Shown in pieces: positions 7,976 to 61,199 of a DNA stretch of 64,000 nucleotides. The stretch is from Rhodosorus marinus CCMP1338 (taxonomy: Eukaryota; Plantae; Rhodophyta): positions 2,666,001 through 2,730,000 of the forward strand of contig JAMWBK010000001.1 of NCBI GenBank assembly GCA_029953675.1, written 5' to 3'. Every line of letters starts with the position of its first letter. Positions within the stretch are counted from its first letter, which is position 1. The position numbers were made by a program, and so were the translations under genes. The notes beneath the pieces are model-generated. The model had not been told where the DNA came from. It was given only the letters and a program-made list of their open reading frames with translations, and did no database searches.

Positions 7976-9734
<1,759 letters not shown>

Positions 9735-14812: not shown

Positions 14813-17653
14813 ATGTGCTTAGGATTTGGAGTGTTGGTTGGAGGCGCTCCAGTCTCGAGGGGTCAGAGGGCTACGACATGGAGAACGAGACAGGTTGGTG
14901 GGACTGGGGCTTGTATGGCCTTGGCTCAGAGCACTCCCCCACCTCCGAATTCGGGTCAGGGTAGGTATCTAGGGCGGTTTTCTTTGAATCATTCTGGGGA
15001 GGTTCCTGTGGACCGTCTTCAGCCGGAGGACAGCATCGAGACTATGCTTGATCATGGGCTTGTCCAGAATGCGCTGGAGATGGTATGTTGGTGTTCAAAT
15101 GAGTGAAGGGTGGTTGCAGCTTCTCGACTTTTGAGTTCTAAGAAGTTTCTTTCCGGGGGGTTCGGTTTCTTGTTTGGAAAGGCGTTGGAAGCTCAGAATT
15201 CGGGTAGGCTTCGAACGAGGGAGTTTAACTCAATTTTGGACAGACTGGGGAAATGCGGTAGGCACGAGGACGCCACTCTGTTCTTTGAGACGCTGCCAGC
15301 AATGCATGATGTGGCGAGTTATTCCATAATGATATCTATGAATGCCAAGAACAATACGGCATTTGAAGCTGAGCAGTTTTTTAAGAGAATGGTCGACAAG
15401 GGTAGGAAGTTTTGATTTGACGAAGATGGGCTACCACGTCCCACCCTGAACTGGTACTGCTTTCGCAAACTGAACACATTCACCGGGGGGGGTTTGTGCT
15501 CCCTGCTTGTTTCGTACTCTAGGGGTCACGCCAAACGCGTTCACCTATTCGGCTTTGATTCAAGCCTTGGGTCGTCAACGTCGATTCTCCGACGCGAAAG
15601 CCGTTTTTCGTTCCATGCACAGTAACGGTGTCGTTCCGAACGTTGTCGCATACAATGCAATAATCAAGGCATATAGCTCGTCGAATGCTATTGAGGAAGC
15701 CTTCTCCGTCGCGAAGGAAATGAGCGAGGTCGGGCGTAGACCCGATGTTGTAACCTACGGAACGCTTATTGACGCGTGTGCTAAGGAACGGGACGTTCAG
15801 AGGTGAGAGAATTTCCACCCTACGAAAAGTTATTAGGCTGCTGCCCGAGCTATGAAGCTGACTCGGATATCCCCTTTTGCCGTATTGCAACAGAGCTTTT
15901 AAAGTGTATGAAGAAATGAGAGCTTGCCTGATTCTGCCAACTGCTGTATGCTATGTTTCGCTAATTGATGCCTGTGGGAGGTCCAACAGACCCAATCGAG
16001 CCTTTGACGTCATGGAATTGATGAAGGCTGACGGTGTGAAGCCGTACTCCGAGGTGTACAATGCTATGATATCAGTTTTTGCAAAGCACAAGATGGTGGA
16101 TGAGGCGTTTCAGATGTACGAAGAAATGCGTCGAAACGCTGTGCCACCCTGCCAGGTGAGCGTTATTTGCTGAAAATAAGGATTTGTGGAGATCTGGCCT
16201 TTTCTATTCCCTGACTTTTGTACTGCTCGCGAATTGGGTTTCCTAGATGACCTTCAACTCGTTGATTTCCGCCTCCACTAAAGTGCGGAACGTCAGGAGG
16301 GCATTTGCGGCGTTCAAAACCATGACGACACAGTTCCACTTGCTGCCGGACGCCAGTACTTTCAGCGTCCTCATCGATGCATGCGGAAAGGCGGGGCTCT
16401 TGGATCGTGCATTTGACCTTTTCCACCGTATGAGGGCTCAAGGGTTCACCCCCAGGCCGGTGACGTACAATGCACTTCTGGACGCACTGGGACGGGCGAA
16501 GATGTATGAAGAGGCGGAATCTCTGCTGGAAGCGATGTTGGCGGAAGAAGTTGCCCCGGACGTCTACACTTTGAACACCATGGTCGCGGTGTGTTGCCGG
16601 AGCGGGCGGCTCCATCAAGCTTTCGAAGTTCTGACCAAGATGAAGGAGCATAAAGTGAGACCAGATGAGGTCACATACAACACCTTGGTCGATGCCTTTG
16701 GGAAAACTGGGTCGGTATCGGCGGCGTTTGATCTCGTTGCACAGATGAGGAGAAATGGTAAGTGGGTCTGGACGACAAGAGCTGGTGCACATTGAACAAC
16801 GGCTCCTGACTGGAGCGATTGCCACTGTCCTATTCCTCGGCGGCAGGTATTGCTCCGAGCACAGTAACGTTCAACAGTCTCGCACTTTCTTGTCACAAAT
16901 TTGATGATGCCAAACACGCCGGAGCAGTTTTGGATGAAGTGGACAAGGTCACATCTCTCGACAGGAAGACTTGCAGGGCCTTGATGTCAGTTTTTCTATC
17001 CAACGATCGTACTGACCAGGTCATCAGGCTTTGTGAAATGGTAGGTTGATCAAAACCGACGTGACCGCTTCCTTTTCAGCTCTTTTGTTCTCTGACCAGC
17101 GACCTCTTCCGCTTCCAAACAGGCATCGGAGGCTCCACCATTCTTTCAGAACAAGTTGCTGGTAACAGTGATTGAACAGAGCGTGGAACACAAGCGTGTG
17201 GACCTCGCCAGACACGTGTACAAAAGTTTTAGCAATGTGGAAGTTATCAGCACTCTCCTCCGCCCTAAAGTCAGGTCGGCGATCACTGGCGATGGGCGAC
17301 AGCGAAGGTTCGATTCTTAGATTGCCCTGCCCTCCACGGGGATATCGTTGTAATTTTTTTGTATTCAGATGGGAGCGCTTTTCGCTTTTTTCGCTCTCAG
17401 AACGCTGCCATAGGCTAGTGACCATATTCGAATCTCGGCATGGCAGCTAGGAAGTCTTTTCACCATATATGTATAAAGGAAAAAACTATGCAACTCCAGA
17501 TTTTGCCCTGCCGGCTGGGAAGGAAGATTATAGAATGCGTTCCCACTAATTCTCCCACTCGGAGGCGTTCCGGGAGATTTTTCATCTGCCATCCTGGAGG
17601 TTGATGGTGACGTTGTGCAAAGGCTTGAGCTTGGACTTGAACGGCTGCTATAA
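14813..17653 (+). CDS. P-class pentatricopeptide repeat protein, probably organelle-targeted (3' end uncertain)
   Basis: Many canonical 35-aa PPR motifs (PNAFTYSALIQALGRQRRFSDAKAVFRSM, PDVVTYGTLIDACAK, PDEVTYNTLVDAFGKTG) over at least 7 exons. Confidence 0.92.
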
Positions 17654-21776: not shown

Positions 21777-23020
21777 ATGGATCCTGCTTTTGTTGTGGGG
21801 TCTATTCGGTCTGGTTTTGGAGGTACGGAATGTGGAGCCAGCACATGCCAGAGGAGCAGGACTGGTGTCAAGTGGAGCATGGCGACTGAAGAGCCAGAAG
21901 CTTCGTCTGAGAAGGAAGGTATGTTGAGTTTGGGTCTCAACAGACCAGAACGCTATGTGTGTTGAGTCCTGGTTTTCAATTTGGCTTTCTGTGCAGAGTA
22001 CAAAATGGGAAAAGTGAGCGCTCCACGAACATCAAAGTATGGAAAGAGAAAGTTCCAAGTCGGAAACGTTAAACAGCAAGGGAAGAAGTACGTCGAATAC
22101 ACACCTGCTCCTCAGTTGAGAATCACTGGCGGAACTGCTAAAGGGAGAAAACTGACCTCCCCCGACGTGTACATGAGACCGATGATGGGAAAGGTCCGTG
22201 AAGCTGTATACTCTATGGTAAGCCTGTTATCCTTTCGTAACTAGAACGAAATTTTTGGTTTCCAGCTGGTCTTCTTATGTACTTATCCACTTGCCCGGAA
22301 ACACAGCTTTACCAGTTCGATGCGCTCGAAGGCGGTATGGCAGTTGATATGTTCTGTGGAAGCGGATCAGTTGGTCTTGAAGCACTTTCAAGAGGTCTGG
22401 ATAAGGCTTTATTTGTCGACTTATCACCAGTTTGCACAGAAACCTGCGAAAAGAATATCGTTCATTGCGGTTTTGAAGGTCGTGGGAGGGCCGTCAACTG
22501 TACCGCCGAGCAGGTACGGAGGGATAAGGTCCCGACCAAAACAAGCATTATTTTTTTTATGCTACTCGATGTTGAAAAAGAAGAACATGGTCGTTACGTT
22601 CGCGTTTCAGATGCTTCTTTACCCCGAACGCTATGGCGTAGAAGAGCATGCAAAGCTGATAACTTTGACTCCGCCGTACGAAGAAGTTGACTACGGAGAA
22701 CTGATGTACGCTGCCGCCGGCTCTGACCTCGTCGGGGAGGGCACTTTTCTCGTAGTTGAATACCCTGTTGAGCTCGGTAAGTCTAGATGATTCATGAGAC
22801 CGGCAGGAGGACAGCGCCACCCACCAATCTTCAGTTCAAGTCAGCCTGAAAAGCCCTAAAACGCTTTTCACTCTCAACAGGATCTTTGGAACCAGCTTAT
22901 AGACATAGATTGGTCGGGATTAGGAACAGGAAATACGGAAGAACAGTCATAGCGATCTACGCTTGTCAACCCCCGAGATTTGTTGATCCGAGACCGGACG
23001 AATTCGCAGCTCCAGTATAA
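21777..23020 (+). CDS. rsmD: RsmD-like 16S rRNA m2G966 methyltransferase, plastid type
   Basis: LRITGGTAKGRKLTSPDVYMRPMMGKVREAVYSM; SAM motif DMFCGSGSVGLEALSRG; TPPY variant of DPPY; RKYGRTVIAIY; 5 exons; N-terminus MDPAFVVG. Confidence 0.9.
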
Positions 23021-23379
23021 TGTATGCTAAAGAGTCCCCCCTTTGTTATGTAAAAGCCGGAGAATTGAAGTGGAAGAAACGAGAAATGACTTTCCCAGGT
23101 CTCCTCAGAGGCACACGAGTGGATGATGGGTCGATCCGGCTAGACCAAACACCGGCAAAGGCATCGCGCCCTGCAACGAGCCACGGACACAACGCACGTT
23201 GTTTGGGGGGGTCCTTTTTTGCAGAAGCAGTAGACTGTACTCACGTAGAGACCCAGGATTGACTCTGTGAATCTGTTCATAGAATAGAAGTAGTCTACCC
23301 AACTAGGTCGCTTCCCTGCCAGCGCGGCTCCCGTGTTTGTCCACCTGAAGCCGTAACCAGAAACTGCTTCGACACGCTC

Positions 23380-23790
23380 CGGCATTGGTAGCAAGCCAGG
23401 TTGACGTCGAGGACTTAGGCGGCAGTGAATCGAAACTAGAGGTGCCTTTGCTGTTCACTCTTCTAGCTCAGTCAAGCCTGGTCCTCGACAAGAAAACACA
23501 TCTCGACGAGCTAAGAGCTCGGGCAGGACAGAATTCCGCGTCGGACGTGCTTTCGAATAGCTGGACAGCTCTTCGATCCTTGATCGATAAGTCAAGGGCT
23601 CAGACTCCTTGAGCAGCTTGAAAAGTTATCGATCGCTGATCAACAAGCTAAGATCTCGGGCAAGACAGGACTCAGTCAGAGAAGCTCCCGAAACGCAAAG
23701 ACGGGACGATCGTCAGAGATAACAGGAACGGACTCCACTGGTCTAACAAGCATTCGAATAGCTGGAAACTTGTTCAGTAAACCGGCTAGG
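23380..23790 (+). repeat. Degenerate internal duplication in an interrupted coding-like segment
   Basis: gagctaagagctcgggcaggacag (23508) vs aagctaagatctcgggcaagacag (23645); ttcgaatagctgga at 23552 and 23753. Confidence 0.6.
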
Positions 23791-24015
23791 ACAATGACCT
23801 TTGAAAAGTTCCTTCCGCTCCAACTCGGGATTGGATTCAATCGGACCTGTCCACCAAATACGTTGAAATCCGCTATCAGCTTTTGATCGCCATTTGGGCT
23901 GGAGACTGGAGAAGCTTCGGCAGCACTAGAGCTTTGACTGTTATTTTTGTACCAAATCGTGCGGCTGAATAGTTTGTTTTTTGGATTTGTGTGAAAAATC
24001 TGGTCGTCGTCAAGT

Positions 24016-25049
24016 ATGGCTGAGGGTTCAGATGACGTTCACGATCTGACTGTATCCGCATCGACTCCGTTCAACCCGGAGATCGAAATTCAAGTGGATC
24101 TGGCTTCCGTGAAATGCTTGGATTCTCAGGTCGGGGGTCACCGTGGAATATTTCTTTCGAGCAAGGACGGAAAAGTGCTTAAGAGATGTATCGCTGAGGA
24201 GATTAACTTCTACCGCTACCTCGCGGAGAACGGTATATCGGAAAGCTTTTTCCCCGCTTCGCCCGGGACAATGGTGCTCAGTATGAAGATCGACGACGAG
24301 GTTATTACGAATGAAACTTACCTGGTCATGGAGGATCTCACCAAAGCGTTCAATCACCCGTCCGTCCTCGACATCAAGGTTGGCACTGTCCCATGGGGCT
24401 GGCCGATTACCGAGGAAAAGCTACAAAAACAAATCAGAAAACGTGAAGCCACAACAACAGGAAAGCTGGGATTTAGAATCACTGGTATGAAGGTAAGAAA
24501 AAGCCTCATCTATGCCCCGCAGCGTCCTGCTCATCAGCTTGGGAGCTTTGCTCCGTTGCTTTGGAGATTGTCTAAAACAAGATCAATGAGTATCAAAATT
24601 TAAGAACATATGCGATTGGTTTTTATCCTATTCAGATGTGGATGCCAAATCAAGGAAACTATGATATTTTAGATCGAACTTTTGGTCATCACCTTGCTCC
24701 AGAGGACGTTCCACCTGCCATCACAAGGTTTTCTGAGAGTGGCAAGGTGGACGTTTTGAAGTCATTCCTGGAGCAACTGATCAAGTTTGAAGCATGGGAA
24801 AAGTCGTATGGAACGAAGAACCTTGGACTTCACGGAGCTTCTCTGCTTTTCATCTATGAAGGGGAGCCGTCTGTTGCAGACCCAGCTGCCCCGAGGCTAT
24901 GCCTGATCGATTTCCCGCACACGGAGTACTTGAAGACCGGCGTGACGCCCAGACTGGAAGCGTGGAAGGAGGGGGACCACGACGGAATTCTGTTCGGAGT
25001 TTCGAATCTTGTGAAGATCTTTGAGGAGGTTGCGAGAGCGCGCTCTTGA
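24016..25049 (+). CDS. IPMK: Inositol polyphosphate multikinase (IPK superfamily)
   Basis: QVGGH, YLVMEDLT, PSVLDIKVG (PxxxDxKxG), GFRITGM, ASLLFIYE, LIDF motifs; intron ~24493-24635. Confidence 0.92.
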
Positions 25050-25124
25050 AAGCGCTCAATCCCCTCTGTAGCTAGCATCTGTCGCTTTGTCTCGTCGGCT
25101 TTTTTTTTTTTTTTTTTTGCTGAT

Positions 25125-26204
25125 TTAGAACCGTGCGTAGGGAGCGAAATCTGGCTTTCTTCGTTCTAAGAACGCATCCCGTCCTTCCTGTCCTTCTTTC
25201 GATTGATAGAAGAGCCGCGTAGCTTCTCCAGCGAGCTGGGACAGCCTGTGGGAGGAGAGACAGGAGTTTGTCGGCACCGGTTAGGTAAAGACGTATACGA
25301 GTTTCGTGACAGTAATCACTGTTGGGAGAGAACGCTGCATACCCTGCTTGACCATCGCAATCAGCATTCAGGGCCGCTTTTAGACAAGCGATTGCGGTTG
25401 GGCTCTTCTCCATAATTTCCCGGCACCATCGAACCGTTTCTGCCTCGAGCTCTTCCAATCGAACCACCTTGTTAACAAGCTGTATGCAAATCGGATCGGA
25501 GCACAAAAAGGGGGACGCTGAGAAGACCCTACGGGATTAAGGACAACCTGTTCGATTGGGCTTACCCCCATTTGAAACGCCTCTTCGGCATTGTACTGTC
25601 TGCACAGAAACCAGAATTCTCTTGCGCGTTTCTGACCGATGATTCGGCTCATATAGCTAGAGCCATATCCACCATCAAAGCTGCCGACTTTCGGGCCGGT
25701 CTGACCGAACCTGGCGTTCTCTGCTGCAATGGTAAGGTCGCACACCATGTGGAGAATATGGCCCCCGCCAATGGCATAGCCCGCGACCATTGCGATGACG
25801 GGTTTTGGGAGTCTCCTCATCAGAATATGGAGGTCCAAAACTTCCAATCTCGGAACGCCATCTTCTCCAACGTAACCACCATCACCCCGAATGGACTGAT
25901 CTCCTCCGGAACAGAACGCCTCTGTCCCCTCACCGGTCATGATCACCACGCGAGTATTCGGATCATCTCGAATGAAAAGAAACGCCTGCTCCAACTCCCT
26001 CAACGTCTTCGGCCGGAAGGCATTCCGTTTCCACGGCCGGCAAATCGTCAACTTCATAATCCCATCCCCGCTAAACTCCACCCGAACATCCTCAAATCCA
26101 CGACAGCGATCCACCAAAGCCCAATTCACCCCTCCTCCACAAGATTCCACCGCCTCAATCCCCATAGTTCTCCCTATTCCCAGAAAACTCCTACAGCGTC
26201 TCAA
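25125..26204 (-). CDS. menB: 1,4-dihydroxy-2-naphthoyl-CoA synthase (start uncertain)
   Basis: [56 protein letters not shown]; 3 exons; ends [10 protein letters not shown]. Confidence 0.95.
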
Positions 26205-26316
26205 AACCCCCCCCTCCTCCCAAAAAAAACATACACACCACCAACCTATCTCCTCTCCAATCCCTAAAGATACTCCTTCTCATACCAATTCAATTAATCC
26301 AAATATCCATCTAATC

Positions 26317-26375
26317 CATCCAGTCACATCCAGTTACATCCAGTCACATCCAGTCACATCCAGTCACATCCAGTC
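26317..26375 (+). repeat. 10-bp minisatellite (CATCCAGTCA) x6
   Basis: Direct inspection; lies in the menB upstream region. Confidence 0.95.
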
Positions 26376-26499
26376 TACTCCCACTCCAGTCCATCCCCCA
26401 TCGATCTATCGATCGATCGATCCACCTCTCGCTCTGCATCTCCCCAAATCCCAAATGACTTCCTCCCCAAACGCAAAAAAAGCAGTGCTTTTGTTTTGT

Positions 26500-27200: not shown

Positions 27201-27359
27201 GTCTAGATGAATGTGAGGATGCTGAGGAGCCTTCTCGGACGCGCTACGGGTTGTCCAGCCTGTCCTTCTGACCTGTCTTGGCCTTTATGGAAATTTGTAT
27301 CCGCTTTTACAGACAGAATATGTGTTCCCCTAGTCATTTTTTTTGTTTTTTTTTCGAAG

Positions 27360-28127
27360 AACGCTTCTGTGGCTCCTTCGGTGTGAGCCCGTGCTGTTTT
27401 GGCAGTCAGGTCATTGCTTTCGGGGGGGGTTTTCTCGATCGCAAGAGATGTGACTTATCTGTGAACGTGCGTTCTGGTCGCCGCTGAGCAATCCCGTCTC
27501 ATATCAGAGCTTTCTTTCAGATAGTCTAGCCCTGGAACCCTGGGCTCGAAGCGGATCCATTCTCGTAGATGCCATCTCAAGGAACAAAACGGATACCAAC
27601 GGGGGCGTGTGCGGCGACATTCATATGATGTAGAATAGAAAACCCAGAGAGTTTTTATTAGATGAGAGAGCTCGTCAGTTTGCTCGAGGAAATCCCTTCG
27701 AACCTGCCCATTCCCTCAAAACCATGAGACCCCTCAAATACGCGAGTTGCTTATGAGGGTATCCTCATGTACTACATGGTTTTGGAGGTCGAGGGCGTTC
27801 GTTGCGAATGGAAGAGGACTGCTTGTTGCAGCGGAGAGCCCTGTCAGATCATCAGTACTGTGGTGTGCTTCTACTGTCGCGATTTATTCTTTTTACTAAA
27901 GGAATCTAGGTTTTCAAATTGGGGAGTTTGTTGAACGTCCGCCCCCGTATACGCTGGTCAAATTGTCGATGAAGTTCGAGAGGGTTTCTCCTCCACATCT
28001 GAGGAGCAAGCATGAGCATCTGACCAGGATGAGATCCCGGTCGAAGAGGCTGAAGAGCTAGATTCATAAGAAGCTGCGGTCGTCTGGTGGCACCTGGTTT
28101 GCTTCCTGTTGTTGAATTCTGTTTCAC
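27360..28127 (+). pseudogene. Disrupted retinoblastoma-related pocket-A relic
   Basis: AYEGILMYYMVLE (cf. RB/RBR LYYRVLE), RTACCSGE (cf. RCMLACSAE), LGSLLNVRP + YTLVKLSMKF across a frameshift (cf. ILNVLNLKAFDFYKVIESF); in-frame TGA 27725, extra C in run 27942-27946, TAG 28059, TGA 28113. Confidence 0.6.
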
Positions 28128-29146
28128 ATGGAGCTGTTGGAGGGAATCGGCGCCAAAGTGCTTGACGGGATGAGCGAGAACGCGCAGTTATCGGTTATGA
28201 AAACAGCATCAGAGTCGTTCCGACTCTCGCGTGGCTTTCCCGCGCTGCAAGGTGAAGAGGCTGAGGTTTTGGCCGCCTGCTCTGTCTACAGCGCTGCCCG
28301 GTTTCGCAGGCTTAAGGTGGACCTGGGCATGCCGAAGGTGACCTTTAAAAGCATTCTGGAAGCTGCGGATGAGTTCCACTTTGCCGGAAAGAGTGCCCAA
28401 GAGCTGGCCTCTTACTACAACGAACTATTTCTGCCCGCACTTCGAGGTAATTTCAGAAATACCTTCCAAACGAACCAGGACACGACTCCACAAGCTTTCT
28501 CTAACGATCAAGCACGGAAAGAGTCGGAATATGGCCCTTCTCATAAGAAAACGAGAGTGTCCGATGAGTTTTTCAGTACTCCGCAACGCCTTCGTATTGA
28601 ATCCGAGCGCTTCCTCGCAGCATCGAAGCCTTCAGTCGAGCTCGAGAACTCAACACAATCCGGAAAGGTGTCCCAAAGCAATCAATGCACCGCACCTGGC
28701 ATGAATGACCGCGTCCCAAGCGACAGTGCGTGCGATGGCCCGTTGGAGAAGGAGGAAACCAAACCAGAATCATCAGGTGAAACAATCGAAGCTGCTCCTG
28801 CCACCATCCTCGAGCCCGAGGCGGGGATTGGGAACCCGACAAGGCCTACAGGAGGAAGCGATTCAATAGCTGCTTCCTCACGCTCTGTTGTCCCGGGAAA
28901 CGCCAAGATCGAATCCGCGGAAACCATTGAGGCGGCTGTGGATTCAGAAGTGAGATCCGAGATGAAGAAAACTGCTTTAGGAGGGAGTGACCCGATAACT
29001 AATTCCACGAGGGCAGCTGATAAGAGAGAAAACAATAGTCAGGTGGTCACCCTGTTTGAGAACGCGACGAACACGGCGGCTGAGAGCATGCAACAACATG
29101 AACTGATTCGCGCCGCGAAGACGCTCCGAGATCTTGGCGTTGGTAC
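28128..29146 (+). CDS. RBR: Retinoblastoma-related pocket-B domain plus long S/E/T-rich linker; probably the first exon of the Pol lambda transcript
   Basis: KVLDGMSENAQLS (cf. plant RBR VRINGMVERLQLS), VLAACSVYSAAR (cf. IMMCSMYGICK), VTFKSIL (cf. LTFREII), ELASYYNELFLPAL (cf. DIITFYNEIFIPAV); stop-free for 382 codons. Confidence 0.8.
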
Positions 29147-29186
29147 GTATCTTGACTCAGGCACCTTCCCTATTTTTCATCTTAAG

Positions 29187-31799
29187 AGAGAGCGTGTGGG
29201 TTTGGCCTGTTCGAGCAGATCTTCGCGAGGGATCAGCGGAAGACGTGTTGGCTACGCAGAGCGAGAAGGTCGATGACTCTAAGCTATTTGCACGTAAGAA
29301 CCCTTTTCTCTCGTCTTGTGCGACTTGTTCAGGGCCTAATGAAGCCTAACTTGCTCACCGACAGGGCACAGTTTCTTCTTCGTCAGCGGCGGGAGTGGTA
29401 TGTCGGAGAAACGGAGGACGCTACTGGTGAAGATCGTGTTGGACAACGGCGGCGATGTCGAATCTGACCTATCCGTGCCAGAGGGTTCATGGACTCTGGT
29501 TGTGGTTGCAGAATCAGAGCTATTCCTCAAACAAGTCCCCGGAATGAGAGCCCTACTAGACATTCCGCTTGTGTTCTTCCACACTCCTGAGTGGATCATC
29601 GAGTGCAAGCGGTAAGGAGGTGTATGAGTATCTTCGCAGCCAGCGGGTCACTGCCTTAACTCAAATGAGCCTCGATCAACAGGAGTAAGTCGCTTTTGAG
29701 TCACGCAGAGTATACAATGAGCAATTTAGAGTCGAGTCTGGAGACTTCAGAATACGCGGATGTGAATCAAGAGGGAGGAAACGACACCAGAGGTATTTGT
29801 TTGGCTTCTCGAGCACGCCAGATTCCTGTCTAGAAGCCTGAACCCTTCACCTCGTGGCATTGACAGCACAAGGATGGGCGTGTGAAAGAACTCTAGAATC
29901 TAAAACGAAGATGCCGGAAGCTAACCGGAAGATCATGGAGATCCTAAAGTACCTTGTTGGCACCTACGATCTTCTCGGAGGAAGAGAGAACGAATTCCGG
30001 AAGCTGGGAACTCAGAAGGCAGTTTCTGCGATACAGAGCTTTCCGACGGAGATCAAAGAGTGAGCTCCTTACCATACCCGACCAGATCGCTGCCATCCAC
30101 CTTTTGTCCGGAGTGTCTCTGAAACTGGTTTACACTCTGCGGAAACTGGAATGGAAACACCTCTGTTAGGCTGAAGGACGTCCGTGGACTGCATGGCATT
30201 GGCTCAGAGACTCTTTCCAAGATCGAGGAGATCATCAATACGGGAACGTGTCGCAAGGCAGAAGCGTTCAAGGTAAGCATGCGATTGCTCTGCTTTAGTC
30301 GAGGTGTTTGATCCTTTACAGTTTGGGTGTGGTCACGCTGGTTTCGAGGACCTTTGACAACCGTTTTTCACACAGTCCTTCCTGGACCAGTTCGTCAATG
30401 TGAAGCAAACGAATCTGATGTTGTCGACTGTGCTTCGTTTCTGAACTCCAGGTCGATCCTCACGTCCACACGTTGCGGGTTTTTGAAGGGATTTGGGGTG
30501 CAGGTTCGTAATTCCAAGGTGATTCGGGTGAGAGCTTCTGAGCGGTTGCTTCGTTGCGCTGAAGGCTAGGCTATGAATGGAACAGGACCAACGACGGCGA
30601 ACAAGTGGTATGCTTGTGGTCTCAGGTCATTGGACGACTTTCAAGAAGGCACGAAGGGCTACTCGCTTCTTAGCAAACAGCAGAAGATCGGCCTGAGGTA
30701 TTATGACGAGTTCAACAAGAAGATTCCGCGACAGGAGGTCGAGGTACGTACTCACCAGTTCCGCGAACATTCTCTTCGGAATTGGGAACTGACACAGAAG
30801 AGGAAACAAAAATCCGAGGGTTTCGTAGGAAATCGAAAACGTCGTGAGAAGCTCTGTCGATCTCCTCGGGGAAGGCCGTTTCCAGTCAATCACCTGTGGA
30901 TCTTATAGAAGAGGAAGAAAGGCGTGTGGGGATGTGGATATGATTCTCACGGCCAACCGAGAATATATTCAAGGTGAACGACGTCCCAATCGTCCGGTCA
31001 TACTGGAACAAAGCACGGCCACCGCCGAGATTTATGGGGGAGGAAAACAATCTACGGAAACGTCGGCCTAGACCTGACCGCTGTGGTTGATTCCGTCGAG
31101 CTTCGACTCTTATATGGACTGTGCATGGACTAACAGTTCACGAACCGTCACTCTACGCGCCTAGGTTTTCTCGCGTTAGTTATTAAGGACTTGAGGGAGA
31201 AAGATTTCATAACCGATGACCTTGTGACGATCACTATGGAAGGCGAACAGAAATACATGGGTAAGGGTGAAGGTTGCCTCTTGTGTCCTGGACTCCTTGA
31301 ATCTGATAGCTGGTTGGTTTGCTCTCGACTCAGGAGTATGCCAACTCCCGGGAAAGCTACATCGGAGGTTGGATATTATCATCGTTCCCACTGATGAGCT
31401 GGCATGCTCGCTTATCTACTTCACGGGTTCCGCCTACTTCAACCGGTCCGTACCGCGACCTTCTCTACCTCACATTGCGGCCCTACTAAGGAAGACGAGC
31501 TTTTCTTATCTCCCTCTCAATTGTTCGATCAGATCGATGCGGAAAAAGGCAAGAAACATGAACTACTCTCTCTCACAGCACTTCATTGCTCCAATCCAGA
31601 CGCAGAAGAACAAGGTCACTTGGACGGTAAGGAGTCCAGGACATGCCAGACCTTTTCCTCATTTTCGCTTCTAGCCCGGGCTCTGAATCGTGTTGCTCTG
31701 GCCCCACAGGGTGAGCGGATCAAAGTCAACACTGAAAAGGACGTATTCGAGATACTGCAGATCCCTTACCGAACCCCGGAAGAGCGCGATCTTGGATAA
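29187..31799 (+). CDS. POLL: BRCT domain + family X DNA polymerase (Pol lambda type)
   Basis: BRCT (SKLFARHSFFFV...[15 protein letters not shown]...[10 protein letters not shown]); Hh[26 protein letters not shown]; [13 protein letters not shown]; [17 protein letters not shown]; [10 protein letters not shown]; [13 protein letters not shown]; [19 protein letters not shown]; about 11 exons reconstructable with canonical splice sites. Confidence 0.93.
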
Positions 31800-42574: not shown

Positions 42575-45500
42575 ATGATGCGATGGCATCCTGAACGGCA
42601 CGCTAATCTTTTGATCAGTACGGCGGGCTGGAGCCCGTCGGTCTCTAAGATCGGTCAGCTGATCGGCAAACCTTTGAGACGTCGTCGATTCACCAAAAAT
42701 GAATCCCGGAGCTTGCTATTGCTCTACCTCCTCAGGACAAACCGTCCAGCGGCGGAGGGTGTGCTCAGAAGGCTAGATGCCTCTGAGCGGGCAAGTACGT
42801 CCAGATAGACCACCGACTAGGTCTTCTAAATCGCGTTTCTTCCAAAAGCTGAAGGTTTAGATCCCACTCTCATCGGATAGGGGTGGTTGGAAGTATCCTG
42901 GGAACGATTCCAAGAGACGATCTGCAGAGCACGATCGGAGCGATCTGGAAGGAGTTGAAGCCCTATGAGATTCAAAAGCATCCGGAGCTGTACGATTACT
43001 CAGTCCTCAACGTGATCTTCAGTGAAAAGTCTCTTGATGCTGGGATCGCATCATGCGAAGCACGTCATCTCGAGGTCACGCCGAACGCGCTGGTCAAGCT
43101 CCTAACCTCGTGCCCGGAGCAGGAACGCGTCGAGCAGTTGTACAAAATAGCGAAGCGATCTCGGAAACTCAGCCGGGAGTTTTTCAGCTCACTGATTCTC
43201 AACCGTCACAGAAGAGGTGATCATGCTGGAGTCCTCGACGCTTTCGCGGAGATGGTCAATTCCGGTATCAAGCCCACGACGGTAGTCTACAGCGCTTCCA
43301 TAAAAGCGCTCGCAGAGGAGTTCGATATCGTACGTTTCAGACTGGTGAGGGCGAAGCTGGTCTCAGCACTTGACCTAGAGCTGAAGCACGTTTTGCTTGA
43401 AGAACTTCTCCCCGACGATGCTACTGGTTTCAAGGTTTACGATAGTGTTCTACTCTCAAACACCGGATCTATTCCAAAGGTGAATTATCGGAAGCATGGA
43501 CAAGCTACGGCTCATCGATATGCAAAGACGATTGACCGCGATCACAAAACGCTTTTCGAATCAACCTTTCAGAATGATCAGAGACGACTCATCTTAGGAT
43601 TGTGTCGGAAGGTCGTCACTGCGCTGCTGAGGAAACGCGACGAGGAGAGCTTTCTCAGCTTTGCAGGCGGTCTGCTTCGCGTCGGCATCAAACCTCCGGT
43701 GGCCGTGTGCCACAGAATGCTTAAGATCAGGTTTCAGCAGTGCGCTTATGGACAGTGCAGTTGGATCTTTGCAAAGGCGTTATCTTCTCCAAGGAGAGTG
43801 AACGCAGTAAGATAGCCGCTGCAACGCTGCTGCACGCGCTGGAGCTTGACGCTGACCACCTCTCACCCTTCGCCCACAAGGACATAGTCGAGATAAACAT
43901 GAATGCTCTACTAAGGCGGAAGAAGTATGTAACCTTGCTAAAGCTCAACGAACGTCTCGCCGAGATCGGAGTGCAAAGGACAGATTCGATTCTGCTCTGT
44001 GTTCTTCAAGCTCACGGCGCGCTCGGTGACATTGTAGGTAAGGTTTGGGCTAGAAAGGCTGCTCTGGTTATACTTTCGTAACCCATCATGCGAATCCAGG
44101 AGTCAGGAACTGCTTAGAGCAACTGGAAAGCAGCGCGTACGTCTTCAAGGACTCCGAGCCGTTCAACCCAGCGTTGCGAACGCTCTCATTTCATAAGGAA
44201 AGTTCAATATATCGACACGAGCTGATCGATAAGATGGTTCGAATGAGCTCCAAGTACAGTGCGCAAACAGTGATCATCGTGGTTCGAGGGTTCGCTAGGA
44301 ACAGGTGCTTGACAGGTATGGCCTACCCGATACAGTCTCCGCTGTCAGCGTCCCAAGGGCCTGAAAGAGGCCGGTTCGTTCGGTTAGAAATGAGGTGGTG
44401 GTTTGCCAAGCTGGTGGTGCGGCCCAGATTGGCTGTCAAGGTGCTTCCGGATGTCATCAAAGCGTACGTTGATGAGGGATTGTCGAGCGACGTACCGGGC
44501 TTGATCGAGTCCCTCGGGCTTTTAGACCCAGAAAGAGTCCAATTCAGGGTCACGCTTGACGCCTACCGAGGAGACGTGGAGAGCGCCTTGGAGGCGGTGA
44601 AGTCGGAACCGAGAAAGCGGATACAGCTCGGTGTTCTTCTCAAGGGCCTCTGCGAACGGAACGACGTAGATTGTACGAGTACCGCAAAGTTCGCCCGAGG
44701 GTGACCGCTGCACGAGTTCTGATGGTCACACGCGTTTCTTACCGTTGATTAGCTATTAGGGCTGTTCTGAAGTACATGAACGACGAGAGGATGGCGTTGC
44801 ATGACAACCGCGTTGCTTCTCTGCTGACCACGATGAAACGGAACGACTGTCTAGAACCCGTTGAGGAGGTTGCAAAGTACAGCACGAATTGGAAAGCGGT
44901 GCAATTGACAGATAATGCCGTAATGAGCTCGACTATGATGAGCGAAGATTATCCCCACGTTGTTGAAATGTACAATCCGAGAACAGGGTCACGCGGTTGC
45001 TATACGATGGAGCAGTATGCTATGCTGATCATCGCGCTTTGCAAGGTGAGTCTTAAAGAGGCGGAAAGGCAACGAATGGAAGCGCTTACCACCGAGGAAC
45101 ACCAATATTCACCCAAAAAGGCCTCAAGTCAAAAGTCCCAATGGCCACCAAGTGCTGGGACTTTGGCTTGTGGGGGTCCTGATAAATATTGTGTTCCTCG
45201 TGTGCTTGATTTGGTCTGATCTGAGCGAGCGTTTTTGCTGATTTCATCAGAGGCGCCCATTCGTTTTCAGGTTTCCCGCACGAAGGAGGCAACTTGTATG
45301 TTCGATTCCTTTCGCGACGCAGGTCTGCGGCTGCCGGGTGTGGTCTGGAGGGCGTACGTGCACGCTCTGACCTTCGAAGAAAACGGCGCGGCAAGGATAA
45401 AGCAGGCTCTTGTGCGCACCGAAAGAAATGTCTTGGCGTTTGCGCGGATGTCTTCCTCGGCTCTAAAGTCGTTTGCACAGCAGGACAAGGTTGCAGAAGC

Positions 45501-45882
45501 GAAGCAGCTGCTGGGCTACGTCAAGGACACCGGCGTCCTGCTCTCAGCGGATTGTTTTCAGAGCTTGGTCCTCATGAACGTACGAAACGAGAGCATCAAC
45601 GAAATGAACATCGTCCTCAAGATGGTGGCCGGGTCTGGAATTCAGCTGACGTCGAGTACAATGGAGCAAGCTCTGGCTCAAATGGAGCGAGGTAACGCCA
45701 ACCCCACCACTGTTGCTAGAGTGTACGCTGCTCTACGCCAAAGAGGAGTCCTCCCGACCGAAGCCTGTGTCGATTCTCTAAAGCACCTATACAACCAAAC
45801 CGGCAAGTTCGAGGTGCTCGCTTGTGCTAGAGAAGCCGACAATCGCGTTCTAAGCCAATCCAGCTCGTCGCAAGCCCCTTGA
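42575..45882 (+). CDS. Degenerate PPR-like helical-repeat protein
   Basis: PPR-like units (DHAGVLDAFAEMVNSGIKPTTVVYSASIKAL; CMFDSFRDAGLRLPGVVWRAYVHAL; LLSADCFQSLV); about 7 exons; (GAG)n/(GCG)n leader. Confidence 0.7.
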
Positions 45883-58834: not shown

Positions 58835-60531
58835 TTAGAGTCGTCGACGTTTTATAGGAGGATCACCACTCTTCGAATTGCCCTTCTTCTTCGAATTAGA
58901 TGAGATCCTGTTTGCCTGGATCTCGTAGGCTACTTTCATTTTTTGCATGTTCTGCTTGGACGCCACAGCGTGATCGACTATCGGCATTGGGTAGTCCTTC
59001 CCGATTACACACCCGGCTCTCATCTGGACTTCTTTGGGAGCGGTCCAAGGCTCGTAGATGTATTTGTGTGGCATGTTCTTCAAGACCGGTAGGTACTTCC
59101 TGATATAGTCCCCATTGGGATCGGTCTGTAGGTATGGTAAGCTGACGGTCAGAGAAGGATCTGACGTTCACAAGGCGCTTCTTGTGATCTCACCTTCTTC
59201 CCGAAGGAGATGGGGCTATACACTCTGAAGTACTGGTAGAAAAAAGCGCTAGAAGAGAGCCACAACCAGTTGGAGATGTTGAGGCTCCAATCTCCATCGA
59301 GAAGATACTTCTCGAAGACGCTTGCGCCCTGCTCCCAACTCTGCCATAGGTCGCCTCGGGTCAAAAAGCAAGCCACCGCATGTCGCGCAAGGTGGTGTAT
59401 CCAACCTTCCATCCTAAGCTGAGCCATGATCGCGTCAATGAAGGGATATCCAGTTCGAGAGTACTCCCAAGCATCTAGGAGCTCGTCATTTCTGTCCCAG
59501 GGGATCTGCTTGCAAATTGCGTTGCCCTCCATCCGCCCAAAGTTGTCCGTGGTGTAGCCTACCGCGTGAAAGTACTCACGAAAGAGAAGCTGACCGTGGA
59601 GCGAGACTGGCGGGACAGAGTGTTTGGGGTGTCTGGCGTAGATATCCGCGAGTCGATGCCAGAAGACTTTGGGCGATAAGCACCCCATCGCCAGGTAAGG
59701 GCTGAGCACGGTCGTCGATGGGTCCAAGGAGTTAGGCGATGTCTTAGGCTTTTCAAAGTTGGCTACCCATTTAGGATCAGAAAGCGATGTCTCGAGGCGC
59801 TTCAACGCCTCGGTCTCTCCGCCAGGAAACAGGAGAGGGGTGTTGGCCACGTACTCGTTCGTATCGATCCACTGTTTGTGCTCCTCGGAGATCAGATTCT
59901 CGTCGGGCCCAGGAATCGGACCTTCCGGCAGCGCAACAGGCTTGGCAACCCGCCCAGCTTGTGCTGTAAGTTTCTGAAATCCGTTGTAGGTGAGCGGAAT
60001 TCGTCCACCGCTCTTGTCCTTCAACATGTCCAGGTCGTAGAGGGTCTTCGAATGCTGCACATAAACTTCCACACCTTGCTCCATGGCAAACTTGTTTACT
60101 AGCGCATCCCTCTCCATACTATAGGGAGCGACATCCTTTTCGTAGGTGAGGACGCCGATCCTCCATTCCGTGAGCAGCTGAGGAATGACCTTGACTGGAT
60201 CACCGAGGGCGACAATCAGTCTAGATCCTCTCTGCCGCAGACTGTCATCCAAATCACGCAGACAATCATGAAGAAACCTATGCCTTGCTGCGCTCATCCG
60301 TACGTTGTGAGCTTCATCCCGCGGCAACTCAAACCTCGATCGATCCACCACGAACAGACAGAACAGCCTGCCGCTCGCGGACGACCCCTCCACGCACCGA
60401 CACACAGCATGGTTCAGCGCAGGGTTGTCATGAAGCCGAAGACCATGCCTAAACCAGTGTAAGGCATTGCCTTTAACAATATTTCCAGTACTAGGTGCAC
60501 AAAATCCAGTACTATCAACCATACCGCCCAT
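58835..60531 (-). CDS. UVR3: (6-4) photolyase / animal-type cryptochrome family
   Basis: HWFRHGLRLHDNPAL, TTVLSPYLAMGCLS, GWIHHLARHAVACFLTRGDLW, NWLWLS, YQYFRVYSPISFGKK, PHKYIYEPW; C-terminal basic KRRRL; intron ~59189-59125. Confidence 0.95.
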
Positions 60532-61199
60532 CCTCAATCCTCCCCACAAGCTCCTCTACGTCTGATGTAAGCAGATGGAAACCGGATGACCCAAAGCAAT
60601 ATCGATCTGTGCCAGTTCACCAAGGATGAACGTCAGCTGGTACTGATCCTGGTTATCCATGCACGACATACATATAGAAGGAAGCGCGACGACATTACGG
60701 AAACTGTAATTCAGTATTTCTCGACGTGATAGAATCAGGACGAGAGACATAAGTACCTCACAATGCTGGATGATATCACTGGACGATGGGGGACCGCAAA
60801 AATACCGAAAAAAAGGTCCCTAGATCGCCACCTTCCCTAGCAACATGAGTGAGCCAGGGCTCCACATACATATCTTGTCACCATATTGCTGCTCAGTTAC
60901 TGATCACAGTCATCTTCTTCCTATGACATAATAACAACGGATCAGCCCAAGTTTGCTAGTTCTCAAAAACCACCAATTTCGAAGGTTAAAACTGAAAACC
61001 CTTCAAATGACATCAAAATGGATGTTTCCGGAAACCGGTGAAGTAGACAACAAAACTGCAGGTCAGCAGGAATTTTATAAATTGTGGATAAGTGTCACTT
61101 TAGTGTCAGGAGCATTGGAATTATTTATGTTATATGAAATATCTGAAGGTAAGGATATTGCCCGTCCTTCAACGCCGTTGTGTCTCATGTTAGATCTTT

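Follow-up and report, generated by a model that had tools for sequence, protein, structure and literature searches.

Organization of the locus

A 64,000-nt stretch of the genome of the red alga Rhodosorus marinus CCMP1338 (contig JAMWBK010000001.1, positions 2,666,001 to 2,730,000), hereafter the window, carries at 28128-31799 of its own numbering, on the plus strand, what is from its domain content a DNA polymerase lambda-type (family X) gene, the 5′ end of which holds the region studied here (Table 1). An original prediction, made from the letters of the window, had read positions 27360-28127 as the decaying pocket A of a retinoblastoma-related (RBR) gene copy, interrupted by stop codons and a frameshift, and the open reading frame (ORF) that follows as an intact pocket B entered through a recruited internal methionine. 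The evidence described below points instead to a long, transcribed, non-coding 5′ leader at 27351-28127, in which the stops are ordinary and the supposed pocket-A motifs are chance strings, with translation starting at 28128; we put the probability of this reading at roughly 0.85.

Transcription and sequence evolution of the leader

The comparison set consisted of complementary DNAs (cDNAs) from three related Rhodosorus lineages (L001, L002 and L003). Positions 117-1924 of the cDNA contig L001 are colinear with window positions 27351-29140, with no intron-sized gap, and beyond this block the contig is spliced at GT..AG introns; in a relative, the segment is therefore an unspliced part of the mRNA. 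The limits 27351-28127 are a minimum extent for the leader, and the true transcription start may be located further upstream. Non-canonical splicing across the region, which the original prediction had put forward for checking, finds no counterpart in the unspliced L001. An intron that would take out the stops is ruled out by the same colinearity.

Positions 27360-28127 contain 26 stop codons, distributed as 8, 9 and 9 over the three frames where base composition predicts about 12 per frame, and a stop density so near to random indicates non-coding sequence rather than a gene with four lesions. The leaders of all three relatives likewise contain stops in every frame, and two of the stops listed as lesions, TAG 28059 and TGA 28113, are common to L001, L002 and L003. 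Identity of the leader to the relatives is 0.69-0.74, with indels of 1, 5, 7, 8, 9, 25 and 26 nt and with mismatches spread evenly over codon positions (42/46/48), so that no codon periodicity is visible. The first 330 nt of the ORF, in contrast, are 0.90-0.92 identical to the relatives, gap-free, and have mismatches of 5/2/18 by codon position. At a synonymous divergence (dS) of 0.23-0.40 among the close lineages, the ratio of nonsynonymous to synonymous divergence (dN/dS) of the domain encoded by this part is 0.10-0.31, indicative of purifying selection. The leader thus evolves in a neutral-like manner while the domain is under selection, a contrast that arises because coding sequence adjoins an untranslated region (UTR). 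The original prediction had asked for dN/dS of its A and B segments, naming neutral evolution of the B segment as grounds for abandoning the model; the downstream segment does not behave neutrally, and the upstream one is unconstrained as a UTR is, not as a decayed pocket.

The polymerase gene

Three close homologues of the ORF at 28128-29276 were found, all of them R. marinus transcripts from MMETSP, at 72-79% identity. One of these, P0002 (602 residues), runs on into the BRCT and HHH_8 domains of family X polymerases, for which Pfam gives BRCT_2 at 21.3 bits and BRCT at 18.3 bits (both under the gathering cut-offs) and HHH_8 at 42.6 bits. In joined pieces of the window Pfam detects DNA_pol_lambd_f (65.5 bits, E 3.8e-18), DNA_pol_B_palm (100.5 bits, E 8.8e-29) and DNA_pol_B_thumb (74.6 bits, E 5.8e-21), and downstream of 30517 peptides of the polymerase X (Pol X) core are visible in the three-frame translation, as expected. 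The order of parts in the protein is N-terminal domain, linker, BRCT, 8-kDa domain, fingers, palm and thumb; all the elements by which polymerase lambda (Pol lambda) and family X are recognized, namely BRCT, the 8-kDa helix-hairpin-helix (HhH) domain, lambda-type fingers, palm and thumb, are thus present and in order.

The exon model relies on blastn of L001 against the window, in which identity per exon is 86-95%, and on introns of GT..AG type that are 71-179 nt long. Exons 2-7 (29219-30516) encode BRCT and the 8-kDa HhH domain, and the stop codon lies at 31797-31799. The original prediction had noted that the 1.15 kb following the region is free of stops. The open frame is indeed there (382 codons as a mechanical ORF), although its last 134 nt are read-through into intron 1, the exon having ended at 29142.

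The linker in which exon 1 ends has a dN/dS of 0.45-0.79 between lineages, relaxed relative to the domain that precedes it, and Pfam finds no domain in it (28458-29142).

Some features of the transcripts are recorded here in their own right. One sample yielded both L002 and L003, transcripts of 1444 nt each, between which dS is 0.013 for the domain and, in the linker, 0.076 with a dN/dS of about 1; from their sequences they appear to be alleles or very recent paralogues. Both also read through intron 1. P0002, labelled 'complete', ends right after GIWGAG, where the coding frame of the window changes (L001 2659-2828; window from about 30517 onwards), and is without fingers, palm and thumb, all three of which the window does encode; its early end is likely a retained intron, or a contig running into one.

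Table 1. Features of the leader and of the polymerase gene in the window
Feature	Position	Strand	Basis or remark
Transcribed non-coding 5′ leader of the Pol lambda-type gene	27351-28127	+	Colinear cDNA of a relative
Conserved 30-codon upstream ORF, putative peptide MKFERVSPPHLRSKHEHLTRMRSRSKRLKS, then stop	27969-28061	+	Conservation block; ATG and TAG
Coding exon 1	28128-29142	+	End set by cDNA L001 and protein P0002; followed by GTACGT
N-terminal cyclin-box domain (predicted), residues 1-110	28128-28457	+	AlphaFold2 fold, conservation, selection
Linker, Ser/Thr/Glu-rich, rest of coding exon 1	28458-29142	+	Fast-evolving
Intron 1 (GTACGT...CAG, 76 nt)	29143-29218	+	Junction inferred from cDNA L001 and P0002
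Exons 2-4	29219-29293, 29365-29611, 29683-29792	+	blastn of cDNA L001
Exons 5-7	29867-30059, 30170-30272, 30452-~30516	+	blastn of cDNA L001
Remaining Pol X core exons (fingers, palm, thumb)	30517-31799	+	Exon limits approximate

The N-terminal domain: fold, start codon and age

The domain at the N-terminus of the polymerase is 84-94% identical among the close relatives. AlphaFold2, using an alignment that included a distant homologue (described below), models it with a mean predicted local distance difference test score (pLDDT) of 89.7 and a predicted template modelling score (pTM) of 0.85, as a five-helix box starting at residue 2, with helices predicted at residues 2-11, 17-34, 45-63, 73-79 and 90-107. 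The best Foldseek matches in the PDB are TFIIB, cyclin K, Brf1, cyclin D and Orc6, with query TM-scores (TMq) of 0.6-0.73 and root-mean-square deviations (rmsd) of 2.3-3 Å, and the top 50 consist nearly entirely of TFIIB, Brf, cyclins K, C, D and H, and Orc6 (TMq 0.5-0.73, rmsd 2.3-3.8 Å). The model thereby identifies the domain as a cyclin-box fold; the fold class is secure, the family is not. Pfam found no TFIIB, ORC6 or cyclin match in the ORF or in any family member, and the PDB sequences, searched with the domain by phmmer and hmmsearch, contained no relevant match. An origin from the ORC6 N-terminal domain (ORC6-N), to which a resemblance of 'FRLSR' to 'LRLSR' and the first Foldseek top match had pointed, was rejected, with an hhalign P of 0.25 and with Orc6 at rank 45 once the better model was used.

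The ATG at 28128 had been regarded as an internal methionine put to new use, a view at odds with the relatives: P0001, P0002 and P0003 all start with MELLE at the same methionine, and the predicted cyclin box is whole, beginning at residue 2. The domain profile, run exhaustively with HMMER against 1.84 billion representative proteins, added one further member, P0005 (E 1.5e-6), whose N-terminal domain is only 33% identical to that of the window. The domain appears to be confined to this lineage. P0005, encoded on contig L004, has a methionine (MEALE) at the position aligned to ATG 28128; its longer annotated N-terminus starts at a GTG picked by a prokaryote-style gene caller.

The gene order of L004 follows that of the window, with a Cons_hypoth95 methyltransferase, an IPK kinase, MenB (on the opposite strand) and then the N-terminal domain, and BRCT-coding sequence lies about 1.3 kb downstream of the domain on the same strand, an arrangement read from the contig DNA. 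The distance from MenB to the domain is only about 650-780 nt, and an RB_A profile gave no signal in that upstream space. These data suggest that the domain and its place upstream of BRCT coding predate a deep split. Any earlier pocket-A debris would therefore have been erased, and later debris would require an A box in L004, which has none, so that a pocket-A relic is unsupported. The idea of a new chimeric gene caught in the act survives in one respect, as the polymerase is chimeric in having an extra N-terminal domain. It is not new: stops 28059 and 28113 are common to lineages separated by a dS of 0.23-0.40, and the succession of domain and BRCT coding is already found in the distant L004.

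L004 1880-6590, from the Logan assembly of SRR22824290, matches in gene order window positions 22000-26204, where an inositol polyphosphate kinase (24016-24603 and following exons) and a MenB-like naphthoate synthase (25380-26204, minus strand) are located.

Relationship of the domain to RB pocket B

Of the intact pocket B, as the domain had originally been described, what survives is a predicted cyclin-box fold with a weak, reciprocal and colinear similarity to RB_B; the similarity is not significant database-wide. RB_B profiles were constructed from human RB and p107 (both verified), a Sorghum sequence (P0007), one Arabidopsis sequence and 11 RB_B sequences of environmental origin. P0007 was the only clean sequence from the search for plant RBR B box homologues, the rest being fragmentary plant gene calls, and enrichment with the environmental loci did not raise the scores. 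In unfiltered scoring against RB_B, P0005 obtained 12.6 bits, which 1 of 5000 shuffles reached, and the window domain 6.2 bits (0 of 5000). The domain family aligned with RB_B in hhalign at P 9e-4 (probability only 23%) over 56-58 colinear columns in helices 3-5, compared with P values of 0.04-0.45 for ORC6-N, both TFIIB repeats and RB_A, and of 0.35 for a reversed control. In a reciprocal unfiltered search of 1128 targets the top four were all RB_B (14.7, 12.5, 8.3 and 7.2 bits), one of them on helix 3 alone.

The hhalign alignment, of low confidence, pairs RB residues C706, Y709, K713 and F721 with C51, Y/F54, R58 and F73 of the domain, and K722, Y756, N757 and K765 with K74, Y97, N98 and R106; the residues of the domain so paired are invariant or conservatively replaced in the domain family. 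The contacts of the LxCxE peptide listed for human RB are Y709, K713, F721, K722, Y756, N757 and K765, C706 not being among them (PMC11720896).

Such RB_B-specific similarity is what would be expected of an ancient capture, in which an RB-family B box was fused long ago to Pol lambda and kept an LxCxE-type groove, the leader being unrelated non-coding sequence. This explanation agrees with the non-coding reading on 27351-28127 and differs from it only in the origin of the domain. Several searches speak against it. Pfam RB_B matches neither the window domain nor P0005 nor any of the three close relatives at E ≤ 10; RBR is absent from the matches of the 1.84-billion-protein scan; a PDB-wide search with a wider profile returned only protein A repeats, listed because of a chance match to the same helix-5 motif, and not RB; and Foldseek against the PDB places no RB chain among its top 50, although many RB pocket structures exist. 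Moreover, against a six-frame background the window's own domain, within the full-length ORF, ranks only third to fifth for RB_B, RHxDQ is absent, and the hypothesis was prompted by the very motif that drives the score. On this balance ancient capture is a tentative alternative and on the unlikely side, and RB-B ancestry of the domain, viewed from its sequence, is doubtful to much the same or a slightly greater degree. Somewhat less probable again is the fuller proposal that the N-terminus of the polymerase would be a stand-alone, RB-pocket-B-derived cyclin box, anciently captured, with an LxCxE-type groove that might tether LxCxE-bearing partners.

If the proposal were true, half an RB pocket would have been captured by a DNA repair polymerase, and the B box would fold without the A box. 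In RB, box A is established as supporting the folding of box B, to which a stand-alone B box would run contrary. The domain is modelled confidently alone, and no A box partner was found for it upstream or elsewhere in the protein or the window. An autonomous RB-B-like reader of LxCxE would bear both on the evolution of the RB pocket and on the recruitment of family X polymerases.

The supposed pocket-A relic

The strings on which the pocket-A claim was based are all in the sequence (YYMVLE at 27770-27787, ACCSGE at 27821-27838, LLNVRP at 27928-27945 and YTLVKLSMKF at 27948-27977), as are the listed disruptions (TGA 27725, the C5 run at 27942-27946, TAG 28059 and TGA 28113) and ILFH followed by the ATG at 28116-28130. 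The single +1 C frameshift that was to connect them does not suffice, since the four motifs occupy three frames (mod-3 classes 2, 2, 1 and 0) and at least two frame changes are needed, and a further frame-2 stop at 27932 had not been listed. Neither are the motifs kept in the relatives: L001 has VYAAVAVE in the place of YYMVLE, and the C run in the LLNVRP region is not conserved, each relative having different indels there.

Pfam detects no RB_A (PF01858) or RB_B at E ≤ 10 in either of the motif-bearing frame pieces. An RB_A profile made from three sequences, human RB (checked residue by residue against 1gux_A), p107 and Arabidopsis RBR1, was run unfiltered on all frames of the leader, on the leaders of the relatives and on the conceptual protein that follows the frame path of the original prediction. 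On that path the score was -0.1 bits (E 0.44). Among 1108 segments of a six-frame background (window and locus L004), random segments reached up to 5.5 bits and the leader frames were not in the top eight.

A recently truncated RBR paralogue, with pocket A decaying at 27360-28127 and pocket B recruited through an internal methionine, would account for the fact that the best local alignments of the RB_A profile, negative in score, fall on the predicted strings (LYYRVLE/MYYMVLE and LNLKAFDLYKVIESF/LNVRPYTLVKLSMKF), for the weak RB_B-like signal downstream and for an unconstrained segment beside a constrained domain. It is very improbable in view of a profile score of -0.1 bits where random segments reach up to 5.5 bits, motifs that need three frames and are not conserved, 26 stops at random density, and stops and a start methionine common to the lineages. 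A relative with 33% identity has the domain and downstream BRCT coding with neither room nor signal for pocket A, the cyclin box is complete from Met1, and there is no RBR paralogue within the 64-kb window. The hallmark of a pseudogene or pseudo-exon is homology to a functional parent together with disablements; here the parent is undetected and the stop density is random. The protein-like look of the frame shortly before the start codon is better explained by an upstream ORF than by a pocket relic. In sum, a broken pocket A is contradicted by an RB_A signal not above background, by motifs that are not kept and by the nature of the segment as a colinear, unspliced 5′ UTR. More generally, short motif strings over several frames in a UTR are no evidence of a pseudogene.

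The suggestion that sequencing or assembly errors conceal a real upstream coding exon, to which one claimed lesion in the C5 run and a G8 homopolymer and T-rich runs further upstream lend some colour, is the least probable of all, because three independently assembled transcripts from two samples have stops in every leader frame, share TAG 28059 and TGA 28113 and do not conserve the C run, and because a few miscalls could not reopen a frame with so many stops.

Upstream open reading frames

The leader of the window, at least 777 nt in length, contains 13 upstream ATGs. One of these opens a conserved 30-codon upstream ORF (uORF) that overlaps the YTLVKLSMKF string and ends at TAG 28059, 66 nt before the main ATG. 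It coincides with a 95-nt block (27967-28061) that is 88% identical to L001 and to L002, compared with 69-74% in the flanks (binomial P 4e-4 and 4e-5). Three of the four sequences (window, L002 and L003) have the uORF's ATG and its TAG; the fourth, L001, has lost this ATG and retains a uORF of 10 codons. Mismatches within the uORF, at 3/2/6 and 7/1/3 by codon position, leave constraint at the peptide level ambiguous. Most likely, to judge from the sequence, the leader would throttle translation of the polymerase through uORF-mediated control of scanning and re-initiation.

Surrounding sequence

Scans of the region for Rfam families, tRNAs, repeats and minus-strand ORFs turned up nothing relevant here and nothing notable on either strand. 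A bacterial promoter and terminator scan, irrelevant for a eukaryote, produced chance-level counts. A tandem array of about eight copies of the 10-nt unit CATCCAGTCA is located at 26307-26395, within the spacer, AT-rich and of low complexity, that separates MenB from the Pol lambda gene. Further away, long ORFs at 8000-9388, 16247-16795, 42883-43815, 45235-45882 and 59149-60549 resemble, by eye and from their translations only, an Obg-type GTPase, several PPR-like repeat proteins and a cryptochrome/photolyase.

Interpretation

Several points weigh against the interpretation of 27351-28127 as a non-coding leader. All of the cDNA evidence is that of related strains, with a DNA difference of 17-23%, and none of it is that of the sequenced strain. 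L002 and L003 begin at the equivalent of about position 27783, so that the full 780-nt leader is perhaps one of several 5′ ends. Of the three sequences in the RB_A profile, human RB alone was verified, and a metagenome scan with the RB_B alignment gave 38 RB loci, none of them from the two Rhodosorus samples, so that the alga's own RBR was absent from the comparison. The weak RB_B-specific similarity of the coding domain also has to be entered here, as does the putative status of uORF translation.

With these points taken into account, the leader is proposed to be transcribed as part of the Pol lambda-type mRNA, its stops being the ordinary stops of non-coding sequence, and translation of the main ORF would start from ATG 28128, as in the three close relatives. 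The product would consist of a selectively maintained cyclin box of 110 residues, a fast-evolving linker, BRCT and the Pol X core; the uORF-rich leader may limit its translation, and the cyclin box may bind a partner. The event originally claimed, a half-decayed RB paralogue in the course of becoming chimeric, would have been a rare snapshot of gene birth, and it is not there. What is left is an ordinary, long, uORF-rich 5′ UTR before a Pol lambda gene, with the modest footnote that the polymerase of this lineage appears to have an extra conserved cyclin-box domain at its N-terminus.

Comparison with known systems

In common with unitary or partial pseudogene relics, the locus has an unconstrained segment adjoining a constrained ORF. 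It differs from them in having no detectable homology to a parent, a random density of stops and a state common to all sampled relatives. Another likeness is to uORF-rich leaders, such as those of GCN4/ATF4-type control and the plant leaders with conserved-peptide uORFs, which the leader resembles in its length of at least 777 nt, its 13 upstream ATGs and a 30-codon uORF whose conservation exceeds the neutral background and which stops 66 nt short of the main start codon. It is unlike them in that the uORF ATG is missing in L001, and the resemblance is known here from sequence alone.

The N-terminal domain shares with RB pocket B (Pfam RB_B, PF01857) the core of a five-helix cyclin fold, a weak colinear similarity in helices 3-5 that includes CSxYxxx[KR] and [FY]YNx[LV][FY]xPx[LA][KR], and, on a low-confidence alignment, the positions of the LxCxE cleft. 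RHxDQ is the most conserved RB_B motif. The domain is without it, fails Pfam RB_B, has no A box and, at about 110 residues, lacks the loop that RB_B has between helices 4 and 5; furthermore, its nearest structures exclude RB, and it sits on a DNA polymerase and not on an E2F-binding pocket protein. Structural likeness is greatest to the TFIIB, cyclin and Orc6 repeats, with TMq values of 0.65 for 1vol_A (rmsd 2.3 Å over 108 columns), 0.68 for cyclin K, 0.73 for cyclin D and 0.64 for the Orc6 N-domain. Similarity at the level of sequence profiles is absent for TFIIB and ORC6-N (hhalign P 0.04-0.3), the Foldseek E values are only 0.1-1, and the domain stands as a single repeat where a tandem pair is usual.

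An open-access literature search for a cyclin-like domain on Pol lambda found no description of such an architecture. The protein as a whole corresponds to DNA polymerase lambda in having BRCT, HHH_8, DNA_pol_lambd_f, palm and thumb in the canonical order, and is distinguished from it in that BRCT is preceded by a predicted cyclin-box domain of 110 residues and a linker about 230 residues long.

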